Position numbers and translations under genes: made by a program
The notes under the pieces: model-generated
The model's database searches: none
What the model was told of the DNA's origin: nothing
Seen by the model: only the letters and a program-made list of their open reading frames with translations
NCBI GenBank assembly: GCA_002104945.1
Contig: MCFH01000072.1
Span: 62,001 to 126,000 of the forward strand
Origin: Piromyces finnis finn
Lineage: Eukaryota > Fungi > Neocallimastigomycota
DNA: 64,000 bases
Direction of reading: 5' to 3'
In this document: positions 4,801 to 32,798 of the stretch, piece by piece
Numbering within the stretch: position 1 is the stretch's first letter
Layout: each line of letters starts with the position of its first letter

Positions 4801-6541
4801 CGTTTTGTTCTTTTTTTTGGAAATCCATCATGCTTGTTTTTTCATGAAGGAGAGGGGTATCTAATAATTTGGTATCATTATCCTTTTCTTCTAGGGTATT
4901 TATAGTTTCATTATTGGTATCCATTATTTTTTGAGTAGGTAGAATTTCTATTTCTAATTCGGTTTCAGTATTGATATCCACTATTTCTTGATTAAGTGGA
5001 ATTTCTGTTTCTAATTCGGTTTCAGTATTGGTATCCACTATTTCTTGATTAAGTGGAATTTCAGTTTCAAATTCAGTTTCTATTTCATTATTGGTATCTA
5101 TTATTTCATGATTAGATAAATCTTCATCCCCTATTTCCAATTCAGTTTCTATTTCAGTATTAGTTGCTTCTTGAGTAGGTAGTTTTTCAGTTTCTAATTC
5201 ATTTTCAGTATTGGTATCTATTATTTCTTGAGTAGGTAGGTTTTCAGTTTCTAATTCATTTTCAGTATTGGTATCTATTATTTCTTGTGTAGGTAGTTTT
5301 TCATTTTCTAATTCATTTTCAGTATTGGTATCTATTATTTCTTGTGTAGGTAGAATTTCTGTTTCTAATTCGGTTTCAGTATTGGTATCTATTATTTCTT
5401 GAGTAGGTAGTTTTTCATTTTCCAATTCATTTTCAGTATTGGTATCTATTATTTCTTGAGTAGGTAGTTTTTCATTTTCTAATTCATTTTCAGTATTGGT
5501 ATTTATTATTTCTTGAGTAGGTAGTTTTTCATTTTCCAATTCATTTTCAGTATTGGTATCTATTATTTCTTGAGTAGGTAGTTTTTCATTTTCTAATTCA
5601 TTTTCAGTATTGGTATTTATTATTTCTTGAATAGGTAGTTTTTCAGTTTCTAATTCATTTTCAGTATTGGTATCTATTATTTCTTGAGTAGGTAGTTTTT
5701 CAGTTTCTAATTCATTTTCAGTATTGGTATCTATTATTTCTTGAATAGGTAGTTTTTCAGTTTCTAATTCATTTTCAGTATTGGTATCTATTATTTCTTG
5801 TGTAGGTAGTTTTTCAGTTTCTAATTCATTTTCAGTATTAGTATCTATTATTTCTTGTGTAGGTAGTTTTTCAGTTTCCAATTCGGTTTCTGTTTCATTA
5901 TTTACTTCGTTTCTATATTCAAGTTCAGACTCAGATATTATATTTGTATTTTGTTTTTCATTTTCAGTTTCAATTTCTAACTCTTGCTTTTCTATTTCAT
6001 GAGACTTTAATACTTCTTTTGGAGGTATGTTTTCTATTGTAATCTGTGCTTTCTTGTTGTTAATGGATTCTATTTCTATAGTACTATTAATATCATATAA
6101 TTCTTCGTCAGGGATATATATTACTTCATTAACGAAATTTCCATTTTTTCCTTCAAGTTCTGTGTATGTATTCGGTAGTTCATTATCATGGTCTTCTGTT
6201 TCTATTTCTATTTCTGTTTCTGTATACATTGTATACATTGAAATATCTTTTTTATTATTTTTTAAATTATTTTCATGGTTAAATTGATATTTAGCATGCT
6301 TATCTTCTGTTTCATGACCAATTTCTGTTGTTACATTTGAATCTATCATTGTAGCTGTGGTTTCTGTTAGATATACTTCACTGATATTTGGGCTATTGAG
6401 ATAGTCATTTTTTTCTGTAATTTGTTCTGTACAGTCCATTGTGTTAGAATTATCTTCACTATTTTTATCTTTTTCAATATAATCTATTATTTCATTTTCA
6501 TTTTCTGAAATGGTATTTACAAAATTATTTTCTATTTCCAT
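49..6541 (-). CDS. Giant orphan membrane protein (~1940 aa): acidic N-terminus with 19-aa tandem repeats, K/E-rich middle, multi-pass TM region, long N/T/Q-rich loop, final hydrophobic helix
   Basis: ORFs 2498..6541 and 49..1413 join through phase-compatible GT-AG introns. Exons: 6541-2518, 2377-2235, 2112-2035, 1940-1862, 1553-49 (sum 5829 nt = 1943 codons). A possible donor (TTG|GTAAAC) at 64/63 means the gene may continue past the left edge. No family recognised. Confidence 0.7.
1651..1808. repeat. (TAAA)n microsatellite, ~39 units, inside intron 4 of the orphan gene
   Basis: Read directly from the sequence; one interruption near 1742. Confidence 0.95.
4912..5896 (-). repeat. Coding minisatellite, 57-bp unit (TENELETEKLPTQEIIDTN), ~17 copies
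   Basis: 12 full-length near-identical units followed by ~5 degenerate units in the translation of ORF 2498..6541. Confidence 0.95.
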
Positions 6542-28477: not shown

Positions 28478-28647
<170 letters not shown>

Positions 28648-28840
28648 ATATTGTTTTAAATAAAATAAATTTTTAAAATTGTTAATATTTAAAAAAATTT
28701 AATTATTTTGAAATATTGATATGATTGGTTAATTTTTTTAAAAAATAACTTTTTTTTATTATAATGTGGAAAAGAAATAATATTCATACATACAAGCTTG
28801 ACTATTTATCAAAATATTTGATAATATAGAATTACAAAAA

Positions 28841-31800
28841 ATGGTAATTAAAATAAAAAAAAATAAAAATAGATTTTTTTTTTTACAATTATTAGAATGT
28901 TGTTTAAGGACTATTATTTCCAATATAAATAAGCAATTAATTAAAAAATAAGGAGTAATATAAAAATTTCAATCATTTAAAAGTATATATTTTAAAATTA
29001 AAAATATCTATGTTATTTTTATTATTATAATATTATTAAAAAAGGCATCTGCTAGCTTTTTAGTCAAAAACCCAGCTTACGGTAATTTATTAACATCAAT
29101 AATATTCTATTTTGCTTAAATTTATTTATTTCAAAAAAGAAGAAATAAAAATTTACTGATAAAAAAAAAAAAAAATTGAATATATATAATAAAGGTCCAT
29201 TGGCCGTTTGTTTTGCTAACAAGATTAATGTTGAATTTTCCAAGGATCAAAAGGAAAATGTTATTTTAAAGGCTGACGGGTAAATAATTTTTAATAAAAT
29301 ATATGTTATAATAATCAAGATGTTTAATATATATATAATATAATTAATAATTAAATAGTTCTGAATTCAAGGGTGTTAGCCATGTTACCCGTGCTTTATG
29401 CCGTGTTTCCACTATTGATTCATACAATACTGATCCAGCTAAGGCTTCTGAAGTAAGAATAAAAAAAAGAAAATCATTTAAATAAAAGAACATATATTAA
29501 AGACAATTTTTAAAATTAATTTTTATTAAAAACAGATTGATTACTGGTTAGATATGGCTCAAGATAGTCTTCTTGGTAAGGATTTCAATTCTTTAATGGC
29601 TTCTTTTGATAAATTAGAAAACCATTTAGCTCTTCGTTCCTTCATTTCTGGTTATCACATTACTTTAGCTGATTTATTCATCTGGGGTGCTTTAAAGAGT
29701 AAGCATATCATACGAATAAATAATATTGTTATTAAAAATTATATTAATCGTATATCATAATTATTATTAATAAAATTATAATCCTAAAAAAGGTAATGCT
29801 ATTTTCATGAAGTACTTAAAGAATGAAGAAATTGGTGACAACTTAACTCGTTGGTTCAATTTTGTTAGTTCTTTAGATTACGTTGAAGAAGCTGTTAATG
29901 CTTTAAACAACTACGTTCAATCAACAAAGGTTAAGAAGGATCAAGGTTCTTTCGATATTGGTCTTAAGGACGCTGAAATGGGTAAGGTTTGTACTCGTTT
30001 CCCACCAGAACCAAGTGGTTATCTTCATGTTGGTCACGCCAAGGCTGCTTTATTAAACCAATACTTTGCTAAGTCTTACAATGGTAAGTTAATTGTTCGT
30101 TTCGATGATACCAACCCAAGTAAGGAAAAGGAAGAATTTGAAGAAAGTATTAAAGAAGATTTACAATTAATCGGTATTAAGGGTGATATTTGTACTCACA
30201 CTTCTGACCACTTCGATACTATCTACAACTATGCTATTCAAATTATTAAGGATGGTAAGGCTTATGTTGATGATACTGACCGTGATACTATGAGACAACA
30301 AAGAGGTGAAGGTATTCCATCTAAGTGCAGAGATCTTCCAGTTGAAGAAAACTTAAGACGTTTCGAAGAAATGAAGAATGCTACTGAATTCGGTTTAAAG
30401 TGCTGTTTACGTGCTAAGATTAGTGTTGATGATAAGAACAAGGCTCTTCGTGATCCAGTTATTTACCGTTGTAACCTTCTTCCACACCATCAAACTGGTG
30501 ATAAGTGGAAGATTTACCCAACTTACGATTTTGCTTGTCCAATTGTTGATAGTATTGAAGGTGTTACCCATGCTTTACGTACTATTGAATACCGTGACCG
30601 TAACCCACAATACGAATGGTTCTTAAAGAACCTTAACCTTAGATGGGTTCACATTTGGGATTACAGTCGTATGAACTTTATTTACACTTTATTATCAAAG
30701 CGTAAGCTCCAATGGTTCGTCGACCAAGGTCTTGTTACTGGCTGGGACGATCCACGTTTCCCAACTATCAGAGGTATTCGTAGACGTGGTATGACTATCG
30801 AAGCTTTACGTAACTACATCTTAATGCAAGGTGCTTCTCAAAAGGATCTTATGCTCGAATGGGATAAATTATGGGCTATTAACAAGAAGGTTATTGATCC
30901 AGTTGCTCCAAGATTTGCTGCCTTAGAAAAGGAAAAGCTTGTTGAAGTTAACATTTTAGATGAAGTTGCTCCATTTACTAAGGAAATCTTAAAGCACAAG
31001 AAGAATCCAGATGTTGGTACTAAGAATGTCAATTACTCTAACAAGATCTACTTAGAATTCGCCGATGTTGCTGAATTACAAGAAAACGAAGAATTTACTT
31101 TAATGGACTGGGGTAACGCTATTGTTAAGAAGATTAACTGGTCTGCTGATCACAGTTCTGTTGAATCTATGGATATTGTCTTACATCTTGAAGGTGACTT
31201 CAAGAAGACTAAGAAGAAGGTTACCTGGTTATCCAGAGTTGCTGCCAGTGGTGAAAAGAGTGTTGTCGATGTTACTTTCTTAGATTATGATTACCTTATT
31301 ACCAAGCGTAAGTTAGAAGAAGATGATGAAGTTAAGGACTTCATTACTCCAGTTACCGAATTCAAGAAGTCTGCTGTTGGTGATATCAACATGGCTTCAT
31401 TAAAGAAGGGTGATATCATTCAAATTGAACGTAAGGGTTACTTCATTGTTGATAAGGCTTACGATGGTACTTCTATGGATATCATTTCTATTCCAGATGG
31501 TAAGGCCGGAAAGATGGCTTCTAAGGCTGATACTGCCTCAAAAAACGACAAAAAAGAAAAGAAAGACAAGAAGGACAACAAGAAGGCTGCCAAGAAAGAA
31601 AAAAAAGAAAAGGTAACTACTAAGGCTGCTCCAGCTGCTAATGGTGTTAAGGGTATGTATGAAGTTAAGCCAATTTATGGTGTTGTTCCAGAAATTGACA
31701 CCAAGACCAAAATGTATGAAATTAAGTCAATTTATGGTGAAAATGTTAAGGTTGACTTACCATTAACTGCTAGTCAACGCTTAAACGCTCCAGCTCAACA

Positions 31801-32407
31801 AGCCGCTCCAGTTGAAGCTGCTCCAGCTACTGACAAGAAGGCTAAGAAGGATAAGAAGGAAAAGAAGGACAAGAAGGCTAAGAAGGAACCACCAAAGGCT
31901 AAGGTCGAAGAAATTACTATTTCTCGTTTAGATATTGGTATTGGTAAGGTTTTAGAAGTTCAACGTCATCCAAATGCTGATTCCTTATATGTTGAAAAGA
32001 TTGATTTAGGTAACGGTGATGTTCGTACTGTTGTTAGTGGTTTAGTTAATTTCCTTAAGGAAGATGAAATTAACCAAAAGAACGTTGTTGTTCTCAAGAA
32101 CTTAAAGCCAGTTGCTATGAGAGGTATTAAATCTTTCGCTATGGTTTTATGTGCTTCTGATGCTGACCACACTAAGGTTGAACTTTTAGTTCCACCAGAA
32201 GGTAGTCAACCAGGTGACAAGGTTTACTTTGAAGGTTTTGAAGGTGAACCAGATGCTCAACTTAATCCAAAGAAGAAGGTCTTTGAAGCTTTACAAGTTG
32301 ATTTCACTACTAATGATGATTTGGTTGCTACTTGGAAGGATATTCCATTTAGAACTGAAAAGGGTGTTATTAAGGCCTCTACTATGGTTAAGGCTACTAT
32401 TAAATAA
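28841..32407 (+). CDS. GUS1: Cytosolic glutamyl-tRNA synthetase (GST-like N-domain + class I core + anticodon domain) fused to a C-terminal EMAPII/Arc1p-type tRNA-binding OB domain
   Basis: ATG-only first coding exon 28841-28843, then four short exons. GST-like IDYWLD..LENHLALRSF..TLADLFIWGAL; core RFPPEPSGYLHVGH, RFDDTN, YPTYDFACP, LSKRKL, GWDDPRFPT; C-terminal RLDIGIGKV..HPNADSLYVEKIDLG..NLKPVAMRGIKSFAMVLCAS. Codon usage typical of a highly expressed gene. Confidence 0.95.
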
Positions 32408-32798
32408 GTTTTTAAATTTTCATAAAACTTTTTTAATTATTTTTATTTTACAAATAGTTTGAATCAATGTATATCAATTATAAACAATAAATAATAAACC
32501 TAAAAATATAAAATTAAATAATATTTTACACTACTTTTCTTATATGTAAATTTGCATCAATTTTAAATTCATTTTTTGAAATTTAAGTGTTATTAAAATA
32601 ATCAAAAACTGAGCCAATCATATTATTTTAATAATTAAGATTTATTTTATTTTAATTTATGTTAAATTTAAAAAAAAATTGAAGTTACTTTTATATATTC
32701 TGTATATTTAATACATATTTTCTTTTAATTTTTTTCTTTTGTTTTAGTTTCATTACATTCTTTAGTTTTTTTTTTTTTTTTTTAAAAAAAAAGAATAA

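Follow-up and report, generated by a model that had tools for sequence, protein, structure and literature searches.

The window analysed here is a stretch of 64,000 nucleotides from the gut fungus Piromyces finnis (assembly GCA_002104945.1, contig MCFH01000072.1, positions 62,001 to 126,000). On its forward strand, at 28841-32407, lies a gene for a glutamyl-tRNA synthetase (GluRS) in which an N-terminal GST-like domain, the catalytic core, a linker with two lysine-rich stretches and a domain of the EMAPII type share one chain. Between the two lysine-rich stretches the linker holds a conserved pair of Met-Tyr motifs resembling the peptide by which the metazoan scaffold protein AIMP2 binds lysyl-tRNA synthetase (LysRS). 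It is very probable, in our judgement, that the gene encodes a housekeeping GluRS that has its own tRNA-binding cofactor built in and may also offer a docking site for LysRS, on a tail that has been inherited vertically.

The GluRS-EMAPII gene, its transcript and its domains

The window is strongly AT-rich, with a G+C content of 28-39% in coding and 9-19% in intergenic DNA. Within it, the GluRS core and the EMAPII domain are encoded in one exon by an uninterrupted open reading frame (ORF) of 866 amino acids (aa) at 29807-32407 on the + strand, the strand of all features of the gene described below. Reading of the sequence, together with tblastn of the 1001-aa homologue P0002, which matches exon by exon at 85-93% identity, gives six exons (28841-28843, 29045-29081, 29195-29279, 29359-29452, 29536-29698 and 29793-32407), five introns that are all GT..AG, and a spliced product of 998 aa. 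The start codon makes up the whole of the first exon, an ATG with the GT donor directly after it and a 201-nucleotide intron reaching to 29044; the joint 28843|29045 is present in an RNA contig from the public run X1, and the start at 28841 given in the first-pass annotation is correct. The joints of exons 2-5 (29045-29698) are likewise all found in RNA contigs, and exon 6 (29793-32407) encodes in a single frame the last part of the GST-like domain and then the GluRS core, linker and EMAPII domain, closing with a TAA stop; RNA contig sequence is unbroken here from 29793 to 32518.

The X1 contig, 3169 nucleotides long, spans 28802-32518 with the five introns removed and zero differences from the window, while a contig of a second public run, X2, covers 29434-32128 and again joins the core to the EMAPII domain. 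In four public runs with the same organism label, 66-77% of sampled words of 28700-32600 are present, a share that agrees with the exonic fraction of this interval. The fusion is real and expressed. That adjacent GluRS and Arc1-like genes were misread as one by the assembly or the gene model has a negligible probability: the Lys-rich, low-complexity region is indeed of a sort open to misassembly, and nothing else speaks for a merger, whereas the ORF is uninterrupted, the spliced contigs X1 and X2, from runs of two studies, bridge the core and the EMAPII domain without differences or indels, and about 40 independently sequenced species share the architecture. No stop, indel or collapsed intergenic region between the two parts appears in the ORF or in the spliced RNA contigs, and a merged model was rejected on these grounds, as the first-pass annotation had argued. 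At 28493-28644, some 200 bp upstream of where the transcript contig starts, there is a perfect (AAAT)38 microsatellite.

The class Ic catalytic domain (tRNA-synt_1c, PF00749) occupies 29984-30898 (ORF aa 60-364; Pfam E = 8e-113), with an intact HIGH motif, HVGH, at 30026-30037 (aa 74-77) and an intact KMSKS-like motif, LSKRK, at 30692-30706 (aa 296-300). Two GluRS/GlnRS anticodon-binding domains follow at 30905-31453 (PF03950 and PF20974; tRNA-synt_1c_C at aa 367-453 and tRNA-synt_1c_C2 at aa 471-549). The enzyme scores 553 bits with TIGR00463, the profile of eukaryotic/archaeal-type GluRS, above the cut-off of 401.75, and 375 bits with the glnS profile, below the cut-off of 425.8. Its nearest database proteins, JGI and Logan sequences, are 80-91% identical, and the next, from chytrids, 55-63%, which agrees with an origin from an anaerobic gut fungus (Neocallimastigomycota). 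For the N-terminal domain, residues 1-200 of P0002 were searched as a stand-in for the joined N-terminus encoded in the window; they match the GST domain of human EPRS (5a1n, E = 4e-18) and the N-terminal domain of yeast GluRS (2hrk, E = 7e-10), which bears out the earlier reading that the GST-like domain is retained. The likeness to metazoan EPRS lies in this domain, most similar to that of human EPRS, and in the presence of modules appended to the C-terminus of GluRS; unlike the fungal protein, EPRS appends WHEP repeats and a ProRS rather than EMAPII. A WHEP domain also occurs in the Mortierella-type fungal GluRS.

Searches of the genome, a 56.5-Mb assembly in 232 contigs, returned two class Ic loci, the fused GluRS and a GlnRS on contig C200 (TIGR00440, 708 bits). 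A second, unfused GluRS was sought and rejected, the sole other class Ic locus being this GlnRS. Nor does the genome have a bacterial-type organellar GluRS, which fits an organism whose hydrogenosomes have no genome. By this census the fused protein is the organism's only GluRS, a housekeeping cytosolic enzyme, and because it is the sole GluRS locus it is expected to charge tRNA-Glu with glutamate.

The C-terminal tail begins with a first lysine-rich stretch at 31541-31624; a second, at 31835-31903, takes the position of the basic middle domain of Arc1p and AIMP1, directly before the OB fold. The EMAPII domain, with its OB fold and C-terminal pseudo-dimer part, extends over 31913-32404. Its tRNA_bind match (PF01588) at ORF aa 711-805 has E = 3.5e-29 and 101.2 bits against a cut-off of 27, and takes in positions 2-96 of the 96 in the profile. 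Over their whole length, the final 200 aa align with human AIMP1/EMAPII (4r3z, E = 7e-54), with the C-terminal domain of human TyrRS (1ntg, E = 5e-49) and with yeast Arc1p (4r1j, E = 6e-38). The alignment reaches the last residue both of AIMP1 (residues 118-312 of 312, a span that takes in the second basic stretch) and of EMAPII (1euj, residues 4-166 of 166). From these end-to-end alignments with AIMP1, the TyrRS C-domain and Arc1p, the domain is identified as a complete EMAPII type and not a bare Trbp111-type OB fold; by homology it presumably binds tRNA. ORF, Pfam and PDB alignments thus agree with the first-pass picture of a single exon carrying the GluRS core, two lysine-rich stretches and a complete EMAPII domain, and the domain onset placed there at about 31913 is consistent with the end-to-end alignment.

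EMAPII domains in the genome and a probable tRNA-cofactor role

PF01588 is found at three loci of the genome: the fused GluRS, a MetRS gene on contig C172 and an Arc1p-like gene on contig C2. The Arc1p-like gene is free-standing and has five exons, at 4873-6693 of L006 (G000:C2:1025000-1034999); in its product an Arc1p_N_like GST-C domain, which scores 32.9 bits where 27 is the cut-off, is combined with a Lys-rich linker and EMAPII, and the nearest solved relative of the GST-C part is human AIMP3 (E = 3e-6). It fits the class of free-standing cofactors of the Arc1p/AIMP1 type, to which the gene in the window, encoding a synthetase, does not belong. The alternative of a genome with no separate ARC1 was rejected on account of this gene and its Arc1p_N_like domain. 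The MetRS gene, at about 2594-6673 of L007 (G000:C172:40500-50499), ends in a Lys-rich linker and EMAPII, and its exon 5588-6172 holds the anticodon domain, the Lys-rich linker and the start of tRNA_bind; the MetRS of this fungus thus carries EMAPII in cis, as in plants and nematodes. Its N-terminal extension (L007, 2869-3129 and 3257-3412) appears GST-like by eye, while Pfam returns nothing and PDB returns glutathione transferases only at E of about 1. The EMAPII parts of MetRS and of the Arc1p-like protein are 81% identical and have a common intron position, which suggests either that a duplication took place recently or that gene conversion has acted between these genes. Judged by domain content, GluRS, MetRS and the Arc1p-like protein, that is, all three partners of a yeast-type complex, each have an EMAPII domain of their own here.

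These loci bear directly on the proposal of the first-pass annotation that the fused protein is a self-contained GluRS-Arc1 chimera, which would replace Arc1p and could scaffold MetRS through its GST-like domain. The presence of a GST-like domain and EMAPII on one chain agrees with such a role, yet the proposal is very unlikely in view of a separate Arc1p-like gene complete with GST-C part, Lys-rich linker and EMAPII, of a MetRS with its own EMAPII, and of the divergence of the GluRS EMAPII, which is 50-56% identical to those of MetRS and the Arc1p-like protein and belongs to another clade. Nothing points to direct scaffolding of MetRS by the GST-like domain of GluRS, and the classical arrangement, in which Arc1p forms the bridge, is therefore still possible.

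Comparison with known systems places the protein between several of them. As in plant and nematode MetRS and human TyrRS, a class I synthetase, a basic linker and a complete EMAPII domain stand on one chain, and the domain is presumed to be a tRNA cofactor in cis; unlike in those fusions, the carrier is GluRS, which is not among the fusions of aminoacyl-tRNA synthetases with OB folds listed in 2024 (MetRS, PheRS, TyrRS and Entamoeba enzymes; PMC11286949). The Lys-rich stretch and EMAPII are homologous to the middle and C-terminal domains of yeast Arc1p, although by E-value the tail is nearer to human AIMP1, and the GST-like N-domain retained here is the one that binds Arc1p in yeast. Unlike in yeast, where EMAPII acts in trans, the domain is borne by GluRS itself, while a separate Arc1p-like protein is still encoded. 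A GST-like module of this kind connects GluRS with Arc1p in yeast and, in animals, with AIMP2 and AIMP3; Arc1p acts as a tRNA cofactor in trans, and the C-domain of plant MetRS in cis.

By analogy, we infer a division of labour along the chain. The class Ic core would perform aminoacylation, and the Lys-rich stretch with EMAPII would most likely act as a general tRNA cofactor in cis that binds tRNA non-specifically and passes it to the core, raising the local tRNA concentration and lowering the Michaelis constant (Km) for tRNA-Glu. The GST-like domain would join GluRS with the Arc1p-like protein, by way of which MetRS would be linked as well, and the two Met-Tyr motifs in mid-tail would tether LysRS dimers to GluRS. 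Known OB-fold fusions to aminoacyl-tRNA synthetases do lower the Km for tRNA (PMC11286949).

A different use of the domain has to be weighed, in which EMAPII serves mainly a non-catalytic end, for example to oligomerise or localise the enzyme or to sequester and traffic tRNA, instead of improving the charging of tRNA-Glu. Human p43 can stand in for Arc1p in yeast although it does not bind the synthetases, pointing to sequestration of tRNA, and of the two enzymes that Arc1p stimulates, GluRS and MetRS, GluRS gains only about two-fold (PMC4394549); the three EMAPII copies in the genome would suit such a use as well. We nevertheless think it distinctly unlikely, given that EMAPII in cis improves aminoacylation by MetRS and by Entamoeba enzymes (PMC11286949).

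Distribution and origin of the fusion

The distribution of the architecture was traced by word-index protein searches with the tail and with the whole ORF, and by an exhaustive search of representatives. GluRS proteins combining PF00749 and PF01588 occur in about 40 named chytrids, in addition to close gut-fungus relatives; among the carriers are Rhizophlyctis, Chytridium, Spizellomyces, Powellomyces, Polychytrium and Nowakowskiella, as well as Batrachochytrium dendrobatidis, B. salamandrivorans and the monoblepharid Hyaloraphidium. In the whole-ORF search, PF01588 is absent from the GluRS proteins of Zoopagomycota, Mucoromycota, Glomeromycota and Basidiomycota that rank directly below those of chytrids. 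The EMAPII domains of chytrid-clade GluRS form one clade (FastTree support 0.89), separate from that of MetRS and the Arc1p-like protein, in a tree of about 126 columns whose deep nodes are weak and which is confined to the EMAPII part that lies on one exon in the MetRS gene and in the Arc1p-like gene; its free-standing proteins are the first 40 representatives of 280-450 aa, with no named AIMP1 or yeast Arc1p among them. On this pattern, the tail of about 310 residues has likely come down by vertical descent from the ancestor that chytrids, monoblepharids and gut fungi have in common.

Three further GluRS-EMAPII proteins are not chytrid-like: P0248 (827 aa; its cluster includes MMETSP transcripts of marine protists), P0262 (796 aa; on an 825-kb ENA contig) and P0254, in which a WHEP helix pair is apparent by eye before EMAPII, with no Pfam WHEP match. 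None of them has the Met-Tyr motifs, their EMAPII domains fall outside the chytrid clade, and the two complete ones have no long GST-like N-domain. These fusions, which extend the architecture beyond fungi and of which at least one belongs to a marine protist, look independent.

No description of a GluRS-EMAPII fusion was found in the literature searched, which misses most subscription journals. The suggestion in the first-pass annotation that the fusion is undescribed stands to this extent, but the architecture is already deposited in public databases for the chytrid species named above and is common in one large fungal clade, so that the objection foreseen in the first-pass annotation, an architecture widespread in fungi, largely applies. 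The advance made by the fusion as such is accordingly modest, GluRS adding one carrier to the known synthetases with EMAPII in cis.

A related arrangement was seen in several Chytridiales (Obelidium, Chytriomyces, Podochytrium and Rhizoclosmatium), whose TyrRS bears EMAPII (P0035, P0037, P0047, P0087 and P0091). In a small tree with four of these five proteins (P0047 being left out), the TyrRS EMAPII nests in the chytrid GluRS-EMAPII clade, beside Chytriomyces GluRS (support 0.91) and far from the EMAPII of a flatworm TyrRS; it would be an independent, lineage-specific copy from GluRS. None of the three PF01588 loci in the genome of the window belongs to a TyrRS.

The bipartite motif of the linker and possible LysRS docking

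The region between the two lysine-rich stretches had been described as an Ala/Pro linker; a spacer is indeed present, but the region also holds a conserved bipartite motif that had been missed. The motif lies at 31655-31738 and consists of two units of the form MYxVKxxYG, MYEVKPIYG at 31655-31681 and MYEIKSIYG at 31712-31738. In an alignment of 36 chytrid fusions the Met-Tyr pairs of both units are invariant (36 of 36), and the Tyr that stands six residues after each motif Tyr is at least 90% conserved.

Two profiles, A1 built from the 36 chytrid tails and A2 from a pan-fungal set, were searched against the PDB, A1 against all 177,635 distinct sequences at E up to 10. A1 matched four sequences, each of them the human AIMP2/p38 N-terminal peptide from a structure with LysRS (9dpl, 4ycu, 6ild and 4dpg; E 0.04-0.11), and one alignment spans both motifs at the same spacing (residues 2-32 of the AIMP2 peptide). 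A2 likewise matched AIMP2 peptides only, here piecewise, both AIMP2 motifs falling on the first fungal motif; over the two profiles the AIMP2 matches have E 0.04-0.24. In the reverse direction, the sole Pfam match of the linker in the window is AIMP2_LysRS_bd (PF16780), with E = 0.0012 and 19 bits, below the gathering cut-off of 27. The same family matches 15 of the 36 chytrid tails (best E = 9e-5), in which six other families match one tail each, and 8 of the 26 tails of the pan-fungal set, in which no other Pfam family is found. In a six-frame search of the 56-Mb genome PF16780 matches the GluRS linker only; no separate AIMP2 was found by this search, which a very divergent AIMP2 could escape. 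The linker is not classed as a member of AIMP2_LysRS_bd, and the resemblance is taken as a functional lead only.

Like the N-terminal peptide of human AIMP2, the fungal linker has a pair of Met-Tyr motifs at a distance of 19-21 residues, and after each of them come a small hydrophobic residue and an aromatic-Gly pair. Unlike in AIMP2, where the motifs stand at the N-terminus of a scaffold protein, in fungi a synthetase carries them, either internally or at its end; the aromatic residue, His in AIMP2, is Tyr in fungi, the stretch between the motifs is unrelated, and the fungal motif, below the Pfam cut-off, is a putative LysRS binder. It is absent from the linkers of the three non-chytrid GluRS-EMAPII proteins.

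The motif is more widespread than the EMAPII fusion. Among the fungal GluRS C-termini surveyed, all from lineages other than Ascomycota, unfused enzymes terminate in the same motif pair in Basidiomycota (Fomes, Punctularia and others), Glomeromycota, Kickxellomycotina, Zoopagomycotina and Entomophthoromycotina; P0136, P0139, P0152, P0177, P0179, P0184, P0201 and P0206 are among these EMAPII-free proteins. Of the chytrid GluRS on deposit, that of Zopfochytrium alone lacks EMAPII, and it too terminates in this pair. Mucorales GluRS have short tails without the motif, and those of Mortierellomycotina have the WHEP domain instead. A description of an AIMP2-like motif in fungal GluRS was not found in the literature searched, with the same gap in subscription journals.

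A structural frame for the comparison exists in the human co-crystal. At the LysRS dimer interface one subunit contributes V101 and I103, and the other R314 and Y344, to a hydrophobic groove that accommodates p38 at Met3-Val6 and Met24-Leu27; the groove residues were noted to be conserved in yeast LysRS (PMC4932449). The LysRS of this fungus is encoded by one exon on the minus strand (1468-3105 of L009, G000:C207:122018-126517) and matches human LysRS at E = 3e-240. Mapped on the alignment with the human enzyme, the equivalents of V101, I103, R314 and Y344 are V, M, R and Y, and S207, K249 and K356 are kept. The conserved Ser corresponds to the human regulatory phospho-site S207.

A complex predicted from a LysRS dimer (residues 57-534, two copies) and a 44-residue linker segment gave ipSAE values of 0.64, 0.45 and 0.24. 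The median of 0.45 is to be read with the caveat that passes at ipSAE of 0.60 or less are wrong more often than right unless the guess is likely beforehand. Three controls gave 0.00 each, the partner reached a pLDDT of at least 55, and 84% or more of the contacts were common to the runs. The mark applied is reached by 51 of 78 solved complexes and by 2 of 108 mismatched pairs, and the tool grades the result as weak support, so that the prediction counts here as a minor argument. On the whole, we consider it quite possible, though short of probable, that the motif pair docks LysRS dimers onto GluRS.

Several points weigh against a GluRS with both a built-in cofactor and a LysRS docking site. 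The free-standing Arc1p-like protein and the EMAPII-bearing MetRS weaken the idea that the GluRS EMAPII serves as a cofactor; we know of no biochemistry for any chytrid synthetase, and yeast LysRS stands, to our knowledge, outside the yeast complex. The motif similarity is marginal (E 0.04-0.24 in PDB, 19 bits against 27 for PF16780), and a motif this short could be convergent or bound by another partner. The weak support from the predicted complex could stem from the model's having learnt the solved human complex of LysRS with AIMP2. Remion et al. question the specificity of the Met-Tyr contacts in the co-crystal and stress instead p38 residues 8-26, which contact K249, T252, S256, L261, K356 and H364 of LysRS (PMC4932449). 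Four of these six LysRS positions differ in the fungus, T252, S256, L261 and H364 being replaced by N, R, Q and Y.

The same doubts feed the alternative that the motif pair is real and conserved but binds something other than LysRS, such as another synthetase, a GST-like domain, an elongation factor or the ribosome, its likeness to AIMP2 being convergent or due to chance. The marginal E-values, the grade of the complex prediction and the questioned specificity of the Met-Tyr contacts (PMC4932449) agree with such a partner, and the possibility is a serious if somewhat doubtful one: in the reciprocal searches AIMP2 peptides are the sole PDB matches and PF16780 the sole Pfam family found in more than one tail, both motifs and their spacing align with profile A1, the groove residues of LysRS are kept in the fungus, and all three controls of the complex prediction stay at zero.

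The wider interest of the locus lies in the occurrence of EMAPII on GluRS, MetRS and the Arc1p-like protein alike, in a GluRS tail whose motif pair is tied by reciprocal profile searches only to the LysRS-binding peptide of AIMP2, and in the same pair ending GluRS in many other fungal phyla. What appears to be new is the AIMP2-like motif on GluRS and a putative complex whose partners each have an EMAPII domain. Should LysRS be docked by the motif, this would offer a testable handle on how multi-synthetase complexes were assembled before animals and on the origin of the AIMP2-LysRS contact. It would also account for the conservation in fungi of the LysRS groove residues that touch the Met-Tyr motifs, which puzzled earlier authors (PMC4932449). 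It is tempting to go further and regard the C-terminal motif of fungal GluRS as a docking site for LysRS that shares its ancestry with the peptide at the N-terminus of metazoan AIMP2, a view that we rate as rather unlikely but far-reaching. Most fungal lineages would then have a multi-synthetase complex with LysRS tethered directly to GluRS, of which the three-protein complex of baker's yeast would be a reduced form, and the docking of LysRS in animals would be older than AIMP2, with a transfer of the motif between GluRS and a scaffold protein in the course of opisthokont evolution.

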